DNA of 64,000 nt from Azolla caroliniana (Eukaryota > Plantae > Polypodiophyta), in the NCBI GenBank assembly GCA_043228905.1, contig JBHGNT010000001.1, positions 30,380,001 to 30,444,000 on the forward strand. The letters run 5' to 3'. Shown piece after piece: positions 16,063-29,300 of the stretch. The position numbers and the translations under genes were made by a program. The notes beneath the pieces are model-generated. The model did not search any database, was not told the origin of the DNA, and saw nothing but the letters and a program-made list of their open reading frames with translations. Positions within the stretch are counted from its first letter, which is position 1; the number at the start of each line of letters is the position of its first letter.

Positions 16063-18336
16063 GTGTTGATGTATGACTTCTTTTTTGTTGGGGATGGGGT
16101 GGGGGTGAGTGCTCTTCGGGGCCTTCTGATGATATAGGAAGGATGATCTCTTCTACTTGGATTGCTTGAGATCTTTACTGTAACTATTTATGATTATCGT
16201 AAATGCTCTATTTTAAACCCTAGCCCAGCAGCCTCTGTATCTGTCTGTCTGTCTGTCTTCCTTCACGCCGCTGATTGCTTATCAATCAAAAGTATTGTAA
16301 ATAAGAATTTGCGCCGTTATTATCTGTGTACCATTACGCAATGAGAGAAAAAGAAAACGAACCCTCCCCCCAAGGAGTTCTTTTTTATTCATGTTGGCTA
16401 GGGATTGTCTAGACTCTAGACTCTAAATATACACCGTTTCCTTCCTGCACCCCCACGTTCACAATTGTATAGTATGTATGTCTTGGGCGTCATTTATCTT
16501 AACCCATCACTTAGTTACGAGCCTCTCTCTTGTAATTTTATTTATTTTTGGATGCTTCTTTCTCCACTACAACAATTTCTTGTGTTGGACCAACATTGTG
16601 TTATGAGCTTCTTATGACATAATAATGGCATTCATAGTGCCGAGACAGAAGCATAATTTCGTTAAGTTTTGGTATGCTTTTGACTAGCATCCTACATAGT
16701 TGCAAGCCTAGATAGGGGGGCAATGCTTCCGACCCAATAAATTTTGTAGAGGATATGAGTTGAGTTAGGTAGGTGTGATGGGTTCAATGGCCTTTGTGAC
16801 AAAACATGGAGAACTTTTATGCATGCTAATTGGGGGTGGGGGGGCGCAAACAATTTCATGCAATGTTTCCATCTTAATAGAATCGATTTTGAATGAATGT
16901 TCCATTAAGAGAGTTAACATATCGAATGCCCCTATTCTTGTTTATTTGAAGGATCAACATGCAAGAGTTATATCCAAACAATACTTGGGTTCAATGGCAA
17001 AACGAAAGGAATACTTTTAAATTTGACGAGATTGAATTTTTATTCTATAAATATCTAAAAATGGGAAGTCTTTTTTAGTAGTTTTCTAGTACACCACAAG
17101 CTAGGTTACAATGTCTATTATCTACAACTTTATCGATAATAATGCAAATTTCATATCTTTCTCATGTCCATTTCCAACGAACAATGGATTGCTAATCCAA
17201 TTAGTTGCCTTGGCATATACAAAAAAACATAGTGATTTCCATGATTGTTGAGTTTGTTATAGGGGTTCAAGGTGTATCTAAGATCGACTTACTTTTCCAA
17301 AAACAAAAATGGTTCATAGAATATACAACACAAGTTGTTTTTTTGCATGAATATACCTCTAACGTGATCATCGGAGCAGAAGCGAGATTTGACATGAGAA
17401 GTAAACCTAGAGCCAAAGAAAACAAGGATGGAAAGGAGAGGGAAATGGACAAAGTTTATATAACGTGTATTACAATAACAACAAAGACCCAAGCTGTGGT
17501 TGCCTAAAGAGGAAAAAAAAATCTAGGAGTGGAAGGCATGATGAGGGGTGGGGTATGAAAAAAAACCATTCACCCACGTGTTTACAAAATCAATGAAATC
17601 AATTCAACTGATTTTTGCAACATCGATCGATGTAGGGGTGAACTCTCTTGTAATTAGCTTACTCTAGTGGTAAGCCATTTACATTACTAGTACTACATCT
17701 TGAGTTTGAAACCCAATTTTCTCACCTTTCTATTACTTCATAGATATCTCCTATTTCACTAGATGCCACTATGGAATGTAGGGGTGATCTCTCTCTCTCT
17801 CTCTCTCTCTCTGAATGGGTAAATACCCCATTTTTTATTGTAAACCAATTGTCTCATGGGCCAATTTTGGTTTTAGAAGACGTTAATATATCTTTCTTTC
17901 TTTCTCATTGTTTCTTGTATCATCTTCTTTGGCTAGATCTTCCAACCGAAGCTAGACAATTGCTAGCGGCCCAACAAGAAAAGAAAAAGAAGCGGATGGA
18001 CATGGTCACTCGTTTCCAATTGGCAAAGTGTTTATGGACATGTGGATGATCTGCGCTACCAGGCCTTGGTGGCCCTCCGGGCCACGGACAAACATGAAGA
18101 AGAAGAAGAAGAAGAAGAAGATACTAATGAGGAATATATATGTACATTATCATACACCCATCTGCTCATGCTTTAGACATCACATATCGACGTGTCTATT
18201 ATGACACAAATCATAAAGAGGCCTGGTGAGGGAATCGCGGCCACAGACGGTGCAGGTCGCTCAGAGAAGGCGCGTGTGATCTGCACCGTCCGATTTGGAT
18301 GAGGAAGAAGGCGCCAAAAAAAAAGCTGCGCAGGCG

Positions 18337-18832
18337 GTCGCCCAACCCTGTCAGAGGTCTCCCAACCGTTTTTTTTTTAAATTTTTGGTTGATTTGGTCA
18401 CCCAACCAACTCAAAAAAAAAAGCAGGTCACCCAATTGTTTATTTTTAAATAGGTTGGGTGACCTGTTTAACCAGGTTGGGAGACTCCTTTAGAGTTTAT
18501 ATTGAGTTGGTCACCCAACCAACTCAATAAAAGAAGCAGGTCACCCAATTGTTGATTTTTAAAACAGTTGGGCGACATGTTTATCCAGGTTGGGAGACTC
18601 CTTTAGAGTTTATATTGAGTTGGTCACCCAACCAACTCAATAAAAGAAGCAGGTCACCCAACTGTTGATTTTTAAAACAGTTGGGCGACATGTTTATCCA
18701 GGTTGGGAGACTCCTTTAGAGTTTATATTGAGTTGGTCACCCAACCAACTCAATAAAAGAAGCAGGTCACCCAACTGTTGATTTTTAAAACAGTTGGGAG
18801 ACCTGTTTATCCAGGTTGGGAGACTCCTTTAG
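18337..18832. repeat. Left subterminal array: GGTC(A/G/T)CCCAAC motifs in 113-bp tandem units
   Basis: CCAGGTTGGGAGACTCCTTTAG recurs at 18472, 18585, 18698 and 18811. Each unit has four motif copies in both orientations. Confidence 0.93.
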
Positions 18833-19069
18833 GGATGTCTATAAAAGCCCTAAACCTGTCATAATCTGTCATTTTTTCAAACGAGATTGACAGGTTGGGT
18901 TTGCCAGGAAAGAGGTGGGAGCTCCTCCATCACAAATCGTCTGTGGCTGCACAAATCGATCTCCTCCATCACAAATCGATCTCCTCCATCACTATTCCCA
19001 GGTATGCTCCTTGTTATTATATCTTCCACAATGTTATATTCATCGCTTCTTAATAATAATGAAAACAAG

Positions 19070-19213
19070 CAAGATTGTATGGACCATATTGATGCATAGA
19101 CATGTTTAAGCTTTAGGGTTTAGAGTCACTATAGACAAGAAGATTGTATGGACCATATTGATGCATAGACATGTTTAAGCTTTAGGGTTTAGAGTCACTA
19201 TAGACAAGAAGAT
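19070..19213. repeat. ~69-bp tandem duplication inside the MULE
   Basis: AAGATTGTATGGACCATATTGATGCATAGACATGTTTAAGCTTTAGGGTTTAGAGTCACTATAGACAAG occurs twice. Confidence 0.9.
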
Positions 19214-19518
19214 AAGCGAACCATAAGTGAAGTATAATAGGATCTAATAGGCAAGGCTTTGTTGATTTCCAGCCACTCTAATCCCAGCCAGTATCTTGAA
19301 GGCATAATCTAGAAGAGGATGTAACCACTCTTATCCACACTATAGGTGAGGCCTATCAAACTTATTATGATCTTGCGTTCACTAGATTTGCTTGCTTAAA
19401 CTTGATTTAATCATCTATATTTTGATTGTTGGTTTTAATGATTTGCTTGCTTAAACTTGATATTTGGTGTGTTTGAGTACTAAAATAAAAAAATGTTTGA
19501 TTACTTGAATGGTGGTAG

Positions 19519-21520
19519 ATGACTTCCAACTCCAAGTACAAAGATTGGTGGGATTTCGATAACAGTGATATATATCCAACTCAAGAGAGGTATGTCACGA
19601 ACCAATCTCCCCCAAGAATGGTTTAGGGTTTGATGCATGTATGTTGACTCGTGATTTGTTAAAGGGTCTTCGTTAGAAGACATTGGCGAAGTCGAGGAGC
19701 CGACATGTGTACGAGTGGGGACAAAATGGACCAAGATGCTCCTCCAAATGGTATGTGGATTTGGTGTCGTTGTAATATCTCAATCTTTATGCCAATCTTT
19801 ATGTCAATCTTAAATATGTAACACAGGTGCAGAAGGAACAGTTGCTCCTCGTCCCGACTTGTTGTATAAGGTTGGAAGAGATGCAAATGGGAACAAGGCT
19901 CGTGCATGTATCTACACTGAGTTTTGCCGCCTCTCGCCAAGGTGGTATCGGAAAAAAAGTGACATGGAGTCACATTTACGCAGAGAACATGCAATAGACG
20001 TAGTCCTACCACGAGGGATGCGTATAGAGGAGGAGGAGGGTATTCCGGGGGCATGCTTTAACAGTTATGAGCGTCAAAGATCACTCAAAAGATTCATGGA
20101 CCCGGAAATCAAGTACTACAGAAATCGACAAAAATATATCCGAAAGTTGAAGGTTAGGGTTGTTTCGAAATACAACTCTATTCCTGCTGAACTCCGTCTT
20201 GACACACAGGCAGAGTTCGTGGCACGATTTATGGACAAAGAGATGACTATATACGACTCCAATAAGGATGAGCGTTTGGAGATGTTGACGAAGAAGATAG
20301 CAGCTGGTTTGGATTCTTATGTAAGTATGAGTGAGGATTTCATTTCAGATTGTTGGAGGGTTTATTGGCAAAATTCAGATAATAAGATGTGTCTTATTGT
20401 GGTGAAACAGTGTAAAAAGGCGGGGATATCCACCCAACCGCAGGGTGTGTCCACGGATGTGGATGAGAGTCAAAACCCATCTGAGGGTGGTGTGTCCACT
20501 CCACCGAGACGGAGACGACCGAAAATGCCAATCCGACGGAAGGAGGTCGAGTCAAACACTGATGTTGTTTCCCTAACATCAGATTCAGATGACGCTGCAT
20601 CGGATGTGGCCATAGTTCAAATTCAACATGGCAAGGGCATAAGGTTATGGATTCAAACCCCAAATAAACACTTTTCCAGGTAGGGTTTAAGTGAAATATA
20701 AACTAGTATCTTACTAATTGACATGGAGTGTGATTTACCTACTCAAAACTACATATTTCCATGCATTCAGGTACCAGCTAACTTGCCCACGTCTCGATAT
20801 GGCCCTTGATGTTACCGAGTCAGATCTTGAGACCATATGCAAGAGCCGTGAAATGGCATCGACATGGACTATGACCTTATTCACGTTGTGGATGGAATAC
20901 TCATTGCCACTCGAGGTGACAGAACGCTTCACCATCGTCGACCCACTATGGGTGCAGCTACACCAGCAGGCAATGAAGGAGCAAGACATCCTTAAGAAAG
21001 TTGCGCAATGTGAGATTACGCTCATTCCGATCGTGCTTGATGGGCATTGGAACTTGTGGTTCACCATGCGACAACAAGCTTCTAAGCTAACTAGCAAAGT
21101 AGTCTTCTGCGATCCATTGAACAGACCAGCAACAGACAACATGCGGAGAATGGCAGAGTTGGCGATTCGGACAATTTCATCTGAACCGTCAGACCACACC
21201 ATTGTGCCCAATGGTCGACATCAGGTACTGCACATCCCAACACAGCCAAATTGTTGGGATTGTGGCTTTTATGTGATGAAGACTATCCAAATGTTGGTGA
21301 GGGAGTTCTTACAAGGATGGATATCTTCGACTTTTGTAAGTGTAATTGCAATTCCTTGTTCATGTGGATTGTGTATAGATGTGTTCTTATACATATTTGG
21401 TTACAGGGCACAGAGATGTGGTTCACCAAACGCGAAGTGGATTCACTTCGGATTCATGTGGACGAGTGGGCACGATCGGTATTAGGATTTGCACTTGCGA
21501 CCGGTGGCTCCATATTGTAA
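19519..21520 (+). CDS. MULE-encoded C2H2-zinc-finger / Ulp1-family (peptidase C48) SUMO-protease-like protein, spliced, ~532 aa
   Basis: Predicted GT-AG exons 19519-19589, 19665-19750, 19827-20320, 20411-20679, 20771-21335 and 21407-21520 join in frame without stops (the 90-nt intron 3 is in frame and could be retained). Catalytic motifs IPIVLDGHW, FCDPL, QPNCWDCGFYV and C-terminal WFTKREVDSLR. N-terminal CIYTEFC-X12-HLRREH. Confidence 0.82.
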
Positions 21521-21856
21521 ATTTTGGGAATGTTGTTTTCAACACAGATTTGGCTATAGAGCTGATGTTGTAACTATATTTTGGAATCCCCAAAAATTTT
21601 GTATAGTGAGAATCGACTCATTGTATATCGCGATATTACTTATTAATGGAAATGTTGTTTACAACAATTATTTATCTCAATCTGAATGTATTTATCTCAA
21701 TCTGAATATTGTGGATGATCTGAATGTATGGTTTTAAACCAATCGCAAGTTGTGGTATTGTAAACGCGATTACTTGTTAATGGAAATGTTGTTCCCAACA
21801 ATTATTGTGGATGTTCTGAATGTATGGTTTTAAACCAATCGCAAGTTGTGGTATTG

Positions 21857-21969
21857 CCCAAACCTTTTAAAATTAATTATCTTTTGTTTTGGTCACCCAA
21901 CCAGGTTGCCCAAACCTTTTAAAATTAATTATCTTTTGTTTTGGTCACCCAACCAGGTCGCCCAACCTG
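21857..21969. repeat. Internal cluster of the subterminal GGTCACCCAACC motif (~52-bp duplication)
   Basis: CCCAAACCTTTTAAAATTAATTATCTTTTGTTTTGGTCACCCAACCAGGT occurs twice, followed by CGCCCAACC. Confidence 0.88.
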
Positions 21970-22140
21970 TTATGTAAACGGCCAGAAAAACGGTCATCTT
22001 AACATGTAAATTAATCGCATTCTCTGTCACTTTAAACCATTCTCTGTCATTTTAATCATAGCTCATTGCATCTCCAATATCTGTCTTATAATCACATTCT
22101 GCGTCTTAATCACATTCTTATTTTGCACAATCTCTAAAAG

Positions 22141-22582
22141 CTAATCAGGATTAGTTATATTCTTAATCAGTTATAATCAGATTAGTTAGATTCTTAATAA
22201 GATTAGTTAGATTCTTAATCAGATTAGGGGGATTCTTAATCAGATTAGTTAGATTCTTAATCAGTTATAATCAGATTTTGTAGATTCTTAATAAGATTAG
22301 TTAGATTCTTAATCAGATTAGGGGGATTCTTAATCAGATTAGTTAGATTCTTAATCATCTTAGTTAGATTCTTAATCAGTTATAATCAGATTTTGTAGAT
22401 TCTTAATAAGATTAGTTAGATTCTTAATCAGATTAGGGGGATTCTTAATCACATTAGTTAGATTCTTAATAAGATTAGTTAGAGTCTTAATCATATTAGG
22501 GGGATTCTTAATCAGTTATAATCAGATTAGTTAGATTCTTATAACCAGATTAGTTAGATTCTTAATCAGATTAGTTAGATTC
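22141..22582. repeat. ~21-bp minisatellite (ATTCTTAATCAGATTAGTTAG) directly upstream of the transposase ATG
   Basis: Roughly 20 units with recurring variants (..TAATAAG.., ..TAGGGGG, ..TTATAATCAG). Ends ~7 bp before the ATG at 22590. Confidence 0.95.
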
Positions 22583-22589
22583 ATTCGAG

Positions 22590-25514
22590 ATGAATCCCAA
22601 CGAAATAGATTTAATCACGTCCTTGTATGATTCTGAGGATGGTTATGCATCACCATACTCCGCAACCATCGACGATGACTTGGATTCGTCTACATCCGAA
22701 GACTATGAGTCGGCTTCATCCGAAGAAGAGGCGGAGGAGGTTGATCCCTTCATGTATTGTTCGGCGAGGTATATTGCGTTCACTAGAGGTATGTACGATT
22801 TAATGCTTAAAGATTTATTAGGTCAAGTTAAGGTAACATTTGAAATGTTAAGCACACTCGCAAGGGGGGCACCTCTTAATTTACATGCATGGAGGCGCAT
22901 GAAGAGTCGTCTCACGCTTATGAATGAGAATGCAATACACCTTAAGGCATCGCCTCATCTTCAGATTACGCACGTAGAGAAATGGAGGGAGATAGTATTG
23001 GCGTCACATTGTGGCGCATCGCACCGTTCTTTGACAGGTACTCTGACAGAATTAAAGAGAAATTGGTCCAATGACCTTCGTGACTATGGGATCCCTAGTG
23101 CGTATGTGAAAGCAGTGATTGACCAATGCGGTTGTCAAGTTGTGTCGAGGTTAACTCCATCTGACATGGAGGGGACAAGTGTCGTGAAATATAAAAAGTC
23201 TAGACCCATAGAAGTGATCAAGATAGAGGCACATAGGGTTGATGATACGTTGATAGATGTTCAATTGAGGTATCACACACGCTTTCGTACAGGGGTCACA
23301 AGGGGTGCACATGTGACTAGGTATAATTGTCACCGATCCGGTGTGGCCAACAAGCAATATCCATGCACTCGACGTAGAAAGCATTCATCTCGATGTGGGT
23401 GTACTTTTCATGTGAACGCTCGAATGAATGGCGGGGTTGACCATGGGACAGTGACCCTTTCAATATATGGACCTCATATGGGTCATGTACCGGGAAGTAG
23501 ACCAGATGCATACTATTTGCCAGTGGCCCCAAATGTTATAAGTTGTTGTAGAGATGACCTTTTTGATGTTGGTTGCGCACGACACGTGGCACGGATGAGC
23601 ATGCGTAAGGAAGCATATCATAAGTCCAAGGCTAGTCCATTAGACCTTGTGAGTTATAGGTTCTTTATGATACCAAAGGAGGTCAATAACATGGCCAACA
23701 AGTTAAAAATCGGGAGTGCCATGTCAGGGGTTGATTGGTCTTTGATGATGCAAGATGCCTATGCCCTCCGAGATCTTGGGAAGGTGGCTCATGTCCAACC
23801 CTACTTGCCTGGTGAATATGGATCTCCCGCAAGGCAACCGTTCATCTTGGTGCTCCAAGATGAATGGATGTTAGAGATGTGTGAGCGACTGTCGATAAAC
23901 AACTCTTGGGCAATCGACTCCACGTTTAAAACAAACCAATTTGGCTTGCCATTATATGCAGCTGTGGCTCCAAATGCCATGGGAGTTGGTATCCCATTAT
24001 GGTACATGATATGTAGTTCTGATAAGGGGTCTAACCATGAGCAAGTAGCTTTAGAAACTTGCTTGAGAGTCATATTTGCACAGATGCCCAATGTGAGGCC
24101 AAATGCCATAGTCATCGATAAAAGTTGGACATCGTATAATGCCATAAGTAATGTGGTTGCAACAGACCGATTATCTTGGATAGTTACAAATGGGCAAAGG
24201 TCGCAAACACATTGTCGACTTTTGTTGTGTCACTTCCATGCAAAAAAAGCATGGTTGGACAACTTGTTGCCAAAGGTAAGTGCAAGTGAGAGAAACCACC
24301 TTTATAATCGGATGTGCCAACTCATGCAATGCATTACGGAATCCACATTCAATGCCCAATGTGAGGACTTAAAGGTAGAATATGCAAACAAGCCAGGTGT
24401 TTGGCAATATATAGAAGGAGGATGGTGTGGCTTGACATGTGTGTGGAGGAAACTGTGGCCCAAATTTGGTAGAATGTTCAACTACGGACATGTTGACACT
24501 ACCAATCTTGTGGAGAGACATTGGCAGTTTATCAAATATACTGCCTTAAGAGGGAGGATAAACTGATCAATTACCGATCTTGTGCATGTTTTAATCGGGG
24601 ACAGTCAAACTGGCACTTGCATCGGGGGTGCTGTTATTGAATGGTACAAGCAACGACAAGAAATATGTGAGAGTGGTAGATTTGCACCACGTGCAAATTG
24701 TAGGGATCAAACAACTAGACTTAAAGAGGCCGAAAGGCTACTAGAGAGGTATGAAACTAATAATGCGATAATGCATATTGTGGACGAGCCTCGATATTGG
24801 TTTAAAATATTGAGCTTGACAAAACCAGATGTATGGTATAATGTATCGCTCCAATGTTCATATTGTGATTGCCACGACCCTGCGAGTAAATGTAAGCATA
24901 TACTTGGCATCAGGATGATTATTGAGAGGCACATGCCACATCTATGTGGGTCATTGCCTTTTATAGATCATGCAACCTATATGCGCAATGACCATTTCAC
25001 AGAGACGGAAATGGAGACAGAGGTAGAACCAGTCGAGGAGACAAACCCTATAACATCACGAGTGGAGGAATGTTTGTCGAAATTACAAACGCTTGAGGGG
25101 GCTATTCAATGTTTTAAGCAAGGGTTACAATCCCTCGACTGTGCAGCAATTTTGGCATGTATGGAGTCCATTCAAGAAACAAGTGAGACATTGGTGTATC
25201 ACACAGGTGCACCGAAACCAACTAACGAAGAAGACCGTGGATCCATAGGGCGTAAGCAAGCAATTGGTGCAAAAAGGGGAGCATCAATCAACATTTCACA
25301 AGATCTTATTGGCAGCTCCCCAAACACTTCCAAGGCACACACAGGAAAAATGCAAAGAGGCGCAAGTCGAGCTAGGAGGCGGTTGCCAATATGTGCGACA
25401 GATAAAATGCGATGCTTGCATTGCGATGCCTTGACCTTTAGATCAAGGGACTCAAATGTTGATTGTTGCAAGAATTGTGGTCGCATCTTGCCATCATCTC
25501 CGGATGAGCCATAA
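22590..25514 (+). pseudogene. MULE (Mutator) DDE transposase with SWIM finger, ~974 aa, one internal TGA at 24564-24566
   Basis: ORFs 22590-24566 and 24582-25514 are in the same frame. Motifs IDSTFKTNQFGLPL (D1), IVIDKS (D2), LLCHFHAKKAW (CxxH), TTNLVERHW (E), WRKY/FAR1-like YNCHRSG..SRCGC..HMGH, and SWIM CDCHDPASKCKH. Confidence 0.92.
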
Positions 25515-25846
25515 ATGTTTGGTAACTTTCAACTTTTATGTTTTGCCAGGATTATTTGTTTTAACAGAAGTATGGTAAAGATCGTCGGTTTTAAGTAATT
25601 TAAGGTTGAATTTTGTGACTATTTGATATGTTATTGTAAGTTTACATTCTTCGTTTTATGTTTTAAATGGTTTTTAACTTTCAACTTTTATGTTTTAATA
25701 TGATTATTTGTTTTAACATAAGTATGGTAAAGATCGTCGGTTTTAAGTATTTTAAGGTTGAATTTTGTGACTATTTGATATGTTATTGTAAGTTTTAAGG
25801 GTAATTAACAAGCTTATTTGAAGATTTTGGTTGGAATGATACATTT

Positions 25847-26131
25847 GGTTGGGCGACCTGCAACGGTTGGGAGACCAATCGGTTGGGCAACCTGTAACTG
25901 TCAGGGTTGGGTGACCTAAAACGGTTGGGCAACTTGCAACAGTCATAGTTGGGTGACCAATTTCGGTTGGGCGACCAACGACTCAGAGTTGGGTGACCTC
26001 TGACAGGGTTGGGTGACCATCGACTCAGAGTTGGGTGACCTCTGACAGGGTTGGGTGACCATCGACTCAGAGTTGGGTGACCTCTGACAGGGTTGGGTGA
26101 CCATCGACTCAGAGTTGGGCGACCTCTGACA
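25847..26131. repeat. Right subterminal array: GTTGGG(T/C/A)GACC motifs including 42-bp tandem units
   Basis: GACTCAGAGTTGGGTGACCTCTGACAGGGTTGGGTGACCATC occurs ~3.5 times (25980-26131), plus further motif copies from 25847, all in one orientation. Confidence 0.93.
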
Positions 26132-26312
26132 ACTTTTTTTTTCGCGCACTCTTCCTTATCGAAATCTGACGGTGCAGATCGCACGCACCTTCCTCTAGGC
26201 GACCTGCACCGTCTGTGGCCACGATTCCCTCACCAGCCCTCTTTATGATTTGGTGCAGGATAGCAACGAGCATCACATATCGCGTGGGCGTGAACGCATA
26301 CCCATACCAATC

Positions 26313-29300
26313 ATGAAAGGAGGGGGTCATGGCGCTTCCACCAAATCGACCGTTAAATTTCGAATGTACGAACCAGAAGCTGAAGATGATGATGATGATG
26401 ATGATGATGCAGATGCATCTCGTAGATCAGGTTTCCTTTTGCTTATTCTCGTTCCCTTCCCTCCTTCTCAACCTCCGTATTTGTTTTGTTTTGTTTTGTT
26501 TTTTCTTTCTCAGGCCTACTGCAGAGAATCTCATCCCTATTCGCGTAGATGTGGAGGTAGATGGGCAGCGTTTCAAGGATGCCTTCACTTGGAACCCTAG
26601 CGGTATGCGTCAAAAATAAATTTTATTTTTTATTTTTATTGTTTTCTTCTTACTCGTATGCTTCTTCATGCTTATGATTCTGTTAAAAAACTGTTATTTT
26701 TGTCATCTTCTTATTCGTGTAACACACTCGATCTCTCACAGGTAAGACCTTTCCTTTCACCTCATTTTTTTATGTGGCTGCTTCTTCACACCACTGTCAT
26801 TCTGTTGTGGAGAAATGGATTTTCGAAGAATCCTTCTTTAGTAGGTTGATGACAAGAGCTATAGATAAATACACTTTGTTATGTCCTCTGAAGTCAAAAT
26901 ATGACGTATTGAAACACAATATATTATATTTTCCACTAGTGCGTATGGGGTTGATAAATTACACAAGGCAATTACCCAAAGTCAAGAGAGCCAAAGTGAT
27001 CACCAAACGTGTGTGCAAGGTGAAGGTTACTCCAAATGGTTCCTTGTCAAAATACAATGCTAGAATGGCTGCCAAAGATTCAACGAAATGAATGGTTTCA
27101 ACTTTCAGGGCATTCACATTGAGATGCATGCTTGGATTAGCATTATGGATGATGCGGAGTTGGTCCAAATAAATTTGAAGTGCATGGTGATCTCCTTGAG
27201 GAGATTTAACCCAGAAGGTTCGTAGATAATTGAAGACATTGCATGTTATGCAAGCTTAAGAAGAGCCTTTATGGTCTCAAGTATGCACCCTGTGAATGGC
27301 ATCCAAAATTTGTTGTAACATGATGTTTAATATCTATACATGTAGCAACAATAAAAATTACCTCTACACAGAAAAACTGAAGATAAGTAAAACTAAGATT
27401 CCTTCAGGGCGTAATTTGTAAAGCCAATGAAACTCATCTTCGACGCCTTAACACCCTTGCATCAAGAGAGCGCGAGCTAAGCCAAATGGAAACATTGGTT
27501 TGGATTGCAGACATGGTGGAATGATTTCAAGCAAGAGAGAGAGAGAGAAATGATAATATATTATTGTCCGTGGGGAGCCAACAGGACCCTCAGGAACAAC
27601 AATTATTGCAAAGCACTCTCCATGATTTCGAAGTAAATGCTAAGTAAAAATCTAAGTTTGTTTCCGAATTTCACTGCTCATCATCACTTTCACAAGTTTG
27701 GATCTGTGGTCAAATAGACGAAAGACCATGCCTGGTGTCATCAGCAATCATTCTGTGCTTGTTAGAACATCTTGAATGCTAGTACAACAGGACAGGAATT
27801 CCTTGAAATCATGCCTGATGTCCTATTATGTATGGCATTCTGTGGTCAAATAGACGAAAGACCATGCCTGGTGTCATCAGCAATCATTCTGTGCTTGTTA
27901 GAACATCTTGAATGCTAGTACAACAGGACAGGAATTCCTTGAAATCATGCCTGATGTCCTATTATGTATGGCATTTCAAAGTGACATACTCTTCAATTTC
28001 TGGTACATCAAGGCAACATAGCTCACATATTCTCGTCGGTTCAATTTGTTTCCAATATCTATGAGTGTGTGGGCATCAAGTTGATAGCATATCCCTCTGT
28101 GGACCTGGGTGTGTGGGTATGAGGTTAGGCATCGGTGAGCCACTCCTGGATTTCCTAATATTAATTCATCAGTGTGATGGTGGACTTTGTTTTTGACATT
28201 TGTGTCTAAATTTCCAGAAATTCAAATCTCTTTGGATAGATACAATGTCATGATTTAAGTCTACTATTATCTATTGAAGGTTTTGATGGTAGAGACTATT
28301 CATATGTGTGAGAAGGCACCTACCTACCTTGGGCCAATGTGATGGCAACGATAATGAAAGAATTTATGTGTTTTAATTAACAGTATTGTTCCTTGATTAT
28401 TCTGCTCTTTTCTTGTTTTTCTCATCATCGTTTTACTTACAGAACACCTTTTATAGTTGAATGCATTCTCTGCTGTATTTCTAAGTTCCATCTCAAGTTC
28501 GTACTTATGAACTTAAAGTTAAAATAGATATGGCATAGCAATGTAAGACTCTTCCATATGTTATTTTAGCAGCCTTGAAAAACCTTGTACCCATGCAGCT
28601 ATTATTTCTCCTCATAATTCCTACTCATATTATTTTTCTCTGTAAAATACAATGCATTATTTCTCCTCGTTATTCTCAGGAATACTAAAAATGTGTCCTG
28701 TTTTTGTATTCTTCTCTCATGTTCCATCCAAAACTTGATTTCAAAATTCAACACTTGATTCTTCTCTCTAATGCAGAGCCTGATTTTGAGATATCTGCTT
28801 TTGCAAAGCGTACTGTGAAAGATTTGAATCTGTCAATGGCATTCATAACACTTATTGCACAGTCAATTCAGGTAAACTACTTTCACAACACATTATCTTA
28901 CGAAAAAAAAAAATGCATAGCAATTACTAAATCTTTAGTTTGGTTATCCAGACACAAGTTAATGAATTCCGCAGCTATGAAAACATGGAGATGGCAACTG
29001 GAGAAAAAGTCCACTGCTTGAAGGTTGTATTTCCAGCTTCTAAATATTTGTACATATTTTTATCTGCATGATCTCAAAGAGTATCTATAATGAATATAAT
29101 ATTACCATATATTACTTGACACTTGACCGACAAAGTTAATGTTCCAAAGCACAAGATTTACTTTGATGATAAACTAATTATTTTAAGTTCCTAAACATCT
29201 CACATACGCTTCTGCTATTTTTGCCAAAATACATCTTTCAAGTTTATGTTTTTCCTTGTAGATTGACTTAAGAGCGAACACCACTGTCATTAGAGACCAG

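Follow-up and report, generated by a model that had tools for sequence, protein, structure and literature searches.

The window analysed here is a stretch of 64,000 nucleotides from the fern Azolla caroliniana (GenBank assembly GCA_043228905.1, contig JBHGNT010000001.1, positions 30,380,001 to 30,444,000 of the forward strand), and all positions are numbered from its first base. It holds a Mutator-like element (MULE) with two genes, one for a MuDR-type transposase and one for a helper protein in which a finger-like motif precedes a Ulp1 protease domain, and with arrays of an 11-bp motif in its non-coding DNA (Table 1).

Anatomy of the element and its two genes

The ends of the element were fixed by comparison with copies on public contigs: L001, L005 and L006/L007, which have different flanks, start at the base matching window position 18188, and the right end of L007 falls at the base matching 26271. 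The terminal inverted repeats (TIRs) pair over about 138 bp (18191-18328 with 26130-26268, 86% complementary) and a 9-bp target site duplication (TSD) stands on both sides, so that both features stand as an earlier note on this DNA, made from the letters alone, had claimed them. An apparent TSD match of 11-12 bp reduces to the 9 bp because the element itself starts with CG. Long TIRs, a TSD within the range of 9-11 bp and a MuDR-type DDE transposase are features of the MULE superfamily, and the clear TIRs set the element apart from KAONASHI and KIU-carrying VANDAL elements, which are defined as non-TIR MULEs (PMC2528002, PMC13317346).

The transposase gene reported in the earlier note is present with its MULE domain, but its open reading frame is split by an in-frame TGA at 24564-24566. 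The element is therefore not complete as had been claimed; the window copy is a recently inserted, non-autonomous member of a fern TIR-MULE family. The stop codon is private to the window copy (a CGA-to-TGA change of the CpG-type C-to-T kind), and CGA stands at this position in L004, L007, L010 and L011. In L007, which is 98% identical overall, the transposase is intact, with an open frame of 979 codons (974 amino acids from the ATG). The DDE residues (D443, D510 and E642) and the SWIM signature CxCxnCxH are invariant from the window family to Adiantum (alignment A3), as are the Cys and His positions of a putative N-terminal zinc finger. The AlphaFold2 (AF2) model of this finger (predicted local distance difference test score, pLDDT, 67) had the DNA-binding domains of WRKY18, WRKY1, GCM and AFT2 as its top PDB matches (probability 0.96-0.97, E 0.04-0.2), and its score against Pfam FAR1 (E 0.024) was below threshold; together these give moderate support for a WRKY/GCM1-type module. 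The nearest named transposases are hypothetical proteins of Adiantum nelumboides, at 37-38% identity over 93-98% of the query. At the C-terminus (25380-25511), a Cys-rich module of the form C-x2-C ... CC-x2-C follows a basic stretch; sister families have kept this module, Adiantum has kept part of it, and it may be a zinc ribbon.

The helper gene is intact in the window copy. All searches with it were run exon by exon. Its predicted domain order is CCHH finger, helical region, basic/acidic linker and Ulp1 protease. Exon 5 matched Pfam Peptidase_C48 (PF02902, E 4e-8); a phmmer search of this exon alone against the PDB returned no match, and a five-member family profile matched yeast Ulp1 (1EUV) at 3e-7, a match in which the catalytic His, Asp, Gln and Cys line up (HW, DP, QPN..DCG). 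These residues are invariant in alignment A4 and kept even in a 48%-identical family, and the Ulp1 domain looks like an active protease of the SUMO type.

The Cys and His pattern of exon 3 is kept in relatives down to 23-30% identity, and an AF2 model (pLDDT 81) predicted two beta strands, then a helix bearing both His residues, then long helices. Pfam searches with the finger exon and with exon 4 returned no family at E ≤ 1, including zf-C2H2; the A2 profile of the finger found no sequence match among PDB chains, which should include VANC21; and Foldseek and VIA-align of the finger-helical model gave only generic helical hairpins (Z ≤ 6.6) and no specific fold. A search of the ESM Atlas returned weak C2H2-flavoured leads (≤ 0.91). 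The motif does not follow the classical C2H2 signature (C-x2-4-C-x12-H-x3-5-H, or Pfam zf-C2H2), and on the model and the alignments we call it CCHH finger-like only, because its spacing is non-canonical and it has no Pfam match, though the ligands are conserved and the model resembles a beta-beta-alpha arrangement. The fusion of a finger to Ulp1 that the earlier note had described thus takes the form of an intact Ulp1 domain preceded by a CCHH finger-like motif that relatives have kept. The note's remark that no separate VANC-like open reading frame is evident also agrees with our searches, in which neither the finger exon nor further open reading frames matched a Pfam family and no PDB sequence match was found.

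Of the claim that the Ulp1 gene is spliced with an intact frame, the frame was confirmed: the predicted exons read through without a stop, and their catalytic residues align to yeast Ulp1. The splicing was not, since three polyA RNA runs labelled as the same species (4-6 reads each of about 12 million per run, on the sense strand) showed no splice joints, and exons 1-2 and all splice sites have no RNA support in them. Four reads of run X15 show G>A at 20957 and continue into unlike sequence from 20968; they clearly come from a different transcribed family member and not from the window copy.

Ratios of nonsynonymous to synonymous substitution rates (dN/dS) were calculated against a subfamily at 90% identity (L009, L010 and L011) and came to 0.15-0.16 for the finger exon, 0.34 for the linker exon, 0.31-0.33 for the Ulp1 exon and 0.16-0.35 for the transposase. 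These values point to purifying selection on the helper gene, which is as constrained as the transposase and so does not look like a decaying passenger. Among 1.84 billion representative proteins the finger domain has 58 relatives, the named ones being from Adiantum capillus-veneris; one of these, P0088 (KAI5078656.1, 700 amino acids), is colinear with exons 3, 5 and 6 of the window copy and carries a C-terminal C48 domain. The joining of finger and Ulp1 is therefore old within ferns.

Table 1. Features of the element in the window (positions of the window) and motif arrays of three sister families on metagenome contigs
Feature	Position	Strand	Remarks
Mutator-like transposon	18188-26271		8,084 bp; ends set by copies with other flanks
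Left TSD	18179-18187		ATCACATAT (9 bp); identical 9-mer at 26272-26280
Left TIR	18188-18328	+	Inverted-repeat match to right arm
Left subterminal array	18336-18832	both	18 motif sites (10 +, 8 -) at 18336-18825; 113-bp unit x3.9
CCHH-finger + Ulp1 (C48) helper gene	19519-21520	+	Open frames, in-phase GT-AG junctions, six predicted exons
Helper predicted exons	19519-19589, 19665-19750, 19827-20320, 20411-20679, 20771-21335, 21407-21520	+
CCHH finger-like motif (exon 3)	19907-19990	+	C-x5-C-x15-H-x4-H; Cys codons 19907, 19925; His codons 19973, 19988
Ulp1/SENP catalytic exon (exon 5)	20771-21335	+	His 21045, Asp 21111, Gln 21243, Cys 21261
Intergenic array	21854-21972	+	3 motif sites at 21891-21966; 52-bp unit x2.3
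Second array, unrelated to main motif	22142-22582	+	21-bp unit TAATCAGATTAGTTAGATTCT, about 16-20 copies; abuts transposase ATG
MuDR-type transposase gene	22590-25514	+	MULE domain PF10551, E 2e-8; in-frame TGA
Putative WRKY/GCM1 (FAR1-like) zinc finger of transposase N-terminus	23295-23489	+	About residues 236-300; Pfam and AF2 model
Right subterminal array	25848-26124	-	13 motif sites, all -; mostly 20-22 bp spacing; 42-bp unit x4
Right TIR	26130-26271	-	Inverted-repeat match; end at 26271 common to L007
Right TSD	26272-26280		ATCACATAT (9 bp); identical 9-mer at 18179-18187
Sister family L025 motif (C/T)CTAACCCGGG		+ and -	11x: 5 on + between genes, 6 on - before right TIR; transposase 71% amino acid identity
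Sister family L026 motif GGAGCCCGAC		+ and -	8x: 4 on + upstream of transposase, 4 on - before right TIR; transposase 75% amino acid identity
Sister family L027 motif GTAGCCCGGCTC	Directly after left TIR	+	8 exact + 2 near-copies; transposase 67% amino acid identity

Motif arrays in the window and in sister families

The motif GGTCNCCCAAC (GGTC[AGT]CCCAAC) occurs at 25 exact sites in the window against 0.03 expected, and at 34 sites against 1.6 expected when one mismatch is allowed. The array reported in the earlier note is thus real, while these counts take the place of its "dozens" of copies. As the note had also stated, the sites are confined to the left end, the spacer between the genes and the right end: they form three blocks, all inside the element, and no site with up to one mismatch lies in the remaining 56 kb of the window. 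The left block ends 8 bp before a TATA box (TATAAAAG, 18840-18847, read from the sequence), and the intergenic block lies about 620 bp upstream of the transposase ATG. Read as its reverse complement, the A-type motif contains TGACC and so resembles a W-box, a match that the variable base breaks in the G and T variants.

Within the family to which the window copy belongs (family 1) the motif is stable. Its variable base is mostly A in the window's own subfamily and almost always G, which makes a CpG, in the 90% subfamily (L009-L012); GGTTGCCCAAC variants are also present in this comparison. This pattern fits deamination of an ancestral CG followed by amplification of the array. The 90% subfamily has eight intergenic motif sites, against three in the window element.

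The second array, built on the 21-bp unit TAATCAGATTAGTTAGATTCT, had been missed in the earlier note. It represents a recent expansion in the promoter region, because near-identical copies have the array and it is absent or short in L010 and L011 of the 90% subfamily. In the 3' region of the transposase, before the right array, a 152-bp unit is duplicated (25512-25795; 1.9 copies, 93%).

Related loci, 27 in all, were collected by a metagenome scan with the finger exon and by look-ups of transposase homologues; the close copies sit in contigs of ENA metagenome assemblies, and the contigs of L019 and L023 end short of the expected array position. Three fern-derived metagenome contigs (L025, L026 and L027) represent sister families in which the layout is kept and the motifs are related but different. 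The motif of L027 can also be written GTAGCCCGGC. All four motifs, that of the window family included, share a CCC-R-R-(C/G) core and have a variable 5' half, and the positions and orientations of the arrays agree between families wherever the sister contigs cover them. The outer ~100 bp of the TIR is 78-84% similar between the sister families and the window element. Between families the transposase is 85-90% identical over the DDE core and 52-60% identical over the zinc-finger region, and the L025 helper has 44% amino acid identity to that of the window over the finger exon and 48% over the Ulp1 exon. The L027 contig (L027:1-3753) contains a left TIR, the array, a transposase promoter and an intact transposase of 955 amino acids, with no helper gene between TIR and transposase; a different tandem repeat (AAATTTGGAC, x9) follows its transposase stop codon.

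Because the sister families carry different motifs at the same positions, comparison of the contigs supports the view that the arrays work in the manner of a recognition code particular to each family. The VANC-like functional class is likewise characterised by short motifs, different in each family, that form tandem arrays within non-coding DNA. Locus L003 contributes no array: its three 135-bp repeats were considered as a motif array and rejected, as they look like coding exons that each end in a splice donor. They precede a relative of the finger exon at 46% identity (L003:1-420).

Candidate readers of the arrays

The arrays are mirror images at the two ends, recur close to the promoters and have been replaced coherently in each family, and for these reasons we read them as sites of self-recognition. 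With moderate confidence, and leaving aside which protein reads them, we take the element to be a non-autonomous copy of a fern MULE that has two genes and arrays by which each family recognises itself. Intact members of the family would encode a MuDR-type transposase, with a WRKY/GCM1-like finger, a DDE core and a SWIM finger, together with the finger-Ulp1 helper. The 11-bp arrays, lying inside both TIRs in mirror orientation and upstream of the promoter of each gene, would serve as the recognition sites. The transposase finger would bind them, join the two ends and switch on the promoters of the element, much as MURA and AtMu1c do at their own TIRs. The finger-Ulp1 protein would then have co-evolved as a helper that acts at the same sites, to which either its own finger or the transposase could bring it; there it would plausibly remove SUMO from silencing or chromatin factors, a substrate that we infer from the domain alone.

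A change of motif between families goes along with changes in both the helper finger and the transposase finger. The check proposed in the earlier note, co-variation of the helper finger with the motif across family copies, was run on the 27 loci and found the helper finger to vary with the motif, but the transposase finger does so too; since both candidate readers co-vary with the motif, co-variation cannot tell which of them reads the arrays. Two natural variants bear more directly on this question. L016 (L016:1-3338) is a mosaic that points to recombination between subfamilies: its finger exon has 75% amino acid identity and a synonymous divergence (dS) of 0.66, against a dS of 0.11-0.21 over the rest of the helper. 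The finger segment has 12 changes, 5 of them within the 11-residue recognition-helix stretch, and yet its arrays carry the family-1 motif and its transposase N-terminus is 99% like that of family 1. The second variant is L027, which has a private array and lacks a helper gene in the covered interval. Another locus, L022 (56% finger identity, same motif), was dropped as evidence against co-variation, being a decayed copy with 7 stops and a dS of only 0.41.

From these variants, from the precedent of MURA and AtMu1c and from the narrow reach of a single C2H2-type finger, which reads about 3-4 bp, we infer tentatively, at somewhat less than an even chance, that the transposase zinc finger is the reader of the 11-bp motif. 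The AtMu1c transposase alone binds its TIRs and demethylates and activates cognate copies (bioRxiv 10.64898/2026.08.24.746577). L016 and L027 give this assignment a modest lean, modest because both come from short-read assemblies of a repeat and L027 is possibly a deletion derivative. The probability left over after this assignment and the helper model described next falls to both proteins acting together, or to host factors.

The earlier note had given the reading role to the helper: its CCHH finger would bind the arrays and steer Ulp1 to the element's own DNA, in an anti-silencing system like that of VANC/KIU, and the transposase would read only the outer TIR. We regard this as doubtful, though it accounts for a good part of the record. 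The finger is conserved from the window family to Adiantum and has the dN/dS of 0.15 given above; the helper is the fastest-diverging protein between families that differ in motif, while the outer TIR and the DDE core stay similar, and this mirrors the divergence of VANC against VANA (PMC5735166). Each gene has arrays in the non-coding DNA ahead of it, and these expand by tandem duplication, as VANC targets do (PMC5735166); the helical region could oligomerise, as described for VANC (PMC13547354); KIU offers the precedent of a VANC-Ulp1 fusion (PMC13317346); and an accessory protein on subterminal repeats is the solution adopted by CACTA elements. Against a role of the helper finger as reader, a motif of 11 bp exceeds what one finger of the C2H2 type would span, the spacing is non-canonical with no Pfam or PDB match to a DNA-binding fold, L016 keeps its motif despite the altered finger, L027 maintains an array with no helper gene between TIR and transposase, and the transposase has a diverging, putative DNA-binding domain of its own.

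It is still less probable, and we think it improbable, that host transcription factors read the arrays as promoter or enhancer minisatellites, or that the arrays are just unstable repeats, with neither protein of the element recognising them specifically. The proximity of the left array to the TATA box, the free variation of array copy number between copies and the presence of an unrelated 21-bp array at the transposase promoter would all fit such an origin, which is hard to reconcile with the same motif in mirror orientation at both ends, including a right end with no gene start, with its coherent replacement at all positions covered (intergenic and right end in L025 and L026, left end only in L027) and with the lack of motif copies in the other 56 kb of the window. 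Least credible is a Ulp1 gene that is a passive, transduplicated host fragment of the Pack-MULE type with no role in the element, a reading already disfavoured and to which we assign very little weight. MULEs often capture pieces of host genes, Ulp1 captures are known (PMC2528002), and many metagenome copies of the helper have decayed (stops in L014 and L017-L024); every intact comparison nevertheless gave a dN/dS of 0.15-0.4, families that are 48% identical share the same catalytic residues, Adiantum has the same finger and C48 architecture, and the gene has a promoter-proximal array of its own.

Several observations weigh against the self-recognition picture with the transposase as reader. 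The WRKY-like assignment of the transposase finger rests on sub-threshold scores, and transcripts are nearly absent in the three polyA RNA runs. Chimeras may occur among the sister loci, whose contigs were assembled from short metagenome reads of a repeat with many copies; L027 could have arisen by deletion and be supplied in trans, its contig ending 318 bp past the transposase; and the flanks of L007 show no TSD. The helper diverges even faster than the transposase between families (44-48% against 71% amino acid identity), a VANC-like pattern that fits a helper-read array equally well, and a subterminal array combined with an accessory gene is also the layout of the CACTA TnpA mode.

Relation to known systems and the insertion site

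Ulp1 domains have been acquired repeatedly by plant transposons. Ulp1 in MULEs has been known since KAONASHI and is also found in melon, rice and grapevine, including TIR-MULEs and in both orientations (PMC13317346, PMC2528002), and Peptidase_C48 was reported as a recurrent accessory domain of active TIR transposons in 1,007 plant genomes (PMC12973397). A 2026 review (PMC13317346) states that some VANDAL elements carry VANC fused to Ulp1 (KIU), and that these find motifs within their own non-coding DNA and bring about hypomethylation. The idea that a targeting domain joined to a deSUMOylase acts on an element's own arrays has thus already been described, and the earlier note's statement that the arrangement is undescribed holds only in part: the fern host, the TIRs, the same-strand genes and the CCHH finger differ from KIU. 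Our literature search found no paper on Ulp1-MULEs of ferns, which is not proof of absence.

KAONASHI (KI-MULE/KIU VANDAL), known from Arabidopsis and other eudicots, likewise has an accessory gene with a C-terminal Ulp1 (C48) domain and an N-terminal non-protease domain. KI-MULEs are without TIRs and have the Ulp1 gene in reverse orientation to mudrA (PMC2528002), whereas the fern element has 138-bp TIRs and both genes on the same strand. The VANC-type N-terminus is DUF1985/DUF287 (PMC5735166), in contrast to the finger and helices without Pfam match of the fern helper, and VANC has been described as dicot-specific (PMC13547354), while the fern family lies outside the dicots. With VANDAL21 (Hiun) the element shares short, tandemly duplicated motifs upstream of genes in non-coding DNA, with the motif differing between related families (PMC5735166), and an accessory protein much more divergent than the transposase; it differs in having no VANC or VANB homologue and in carrying arrays that are also subterminal at both ends.

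AtMu1c and maize MuDR resemble the element as TIR-MULEs with a DDE and SWIM transposase, to which a WRKY finger is added, in the fern element a putative one, and in MuDR a further gene encodes a helper that contacts the transposase at its variable N-terminus (PMC12973397). AtMu1, on the other hand, lacks any accessory gene, MURB is no protease, and the discrete arrays of an 11-bp motif inside the TIRs of the fern family stand against the single TIR site of AtMu1c and MuDR. The TnpA/TnpD system of CACTA (En/Spm) elements is similar in layout: a short motif is repeated on both strands next to the inner side of short, conserved termini, and one of the two genes is an accessory regulator. CACTA elements belong to another superfamily, however, the DNA-binding domain of TnpA is a double helix-turn-helix, and the CACTA-Ulp1 fusions involve Tnp2 (PMC2528002).

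Ferns may hold a convergent counterpart of the eudicot VANC/KIU system, in which a CCHH-finger-Ulp1 protein at family-specific arrays of fast turnover would strip SUMO from the silencing machinery and keep the family active; we consider this unlikely, though worth stating for what it would mean. If true, sequence-specific anti-silencing by Ulp1 fusions arose at least twice, with unrelated targeting domains. Such anti-silencing has until now been linked to the VANC fold, which is specific to dicots; the fern family adds another, independent system in which to test it, with an unrelated domain at the N-terminus of Ulp1 and with at least four sister families in which the motif is swapped while the termini and the catalytic core are kept. 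Natural variants such as the recombinant finger exon and the helper-less element could separate the roles of transposase and helper.

At the locus itself the practical consequences are smaller, and the copy cannot move alone. A gene for an SNF5/BSH-type chromatin remodeller lies downstream, with its likely ATG at 26313, 41 bp from the right end of the element, a Pfam SNF5 match (E 5e-8) on the exon at 26515-26598 and exons that reach about 31350. On either side of the insertion are GAA and TGA microsatellites (18096-18121 and 26381-26409).

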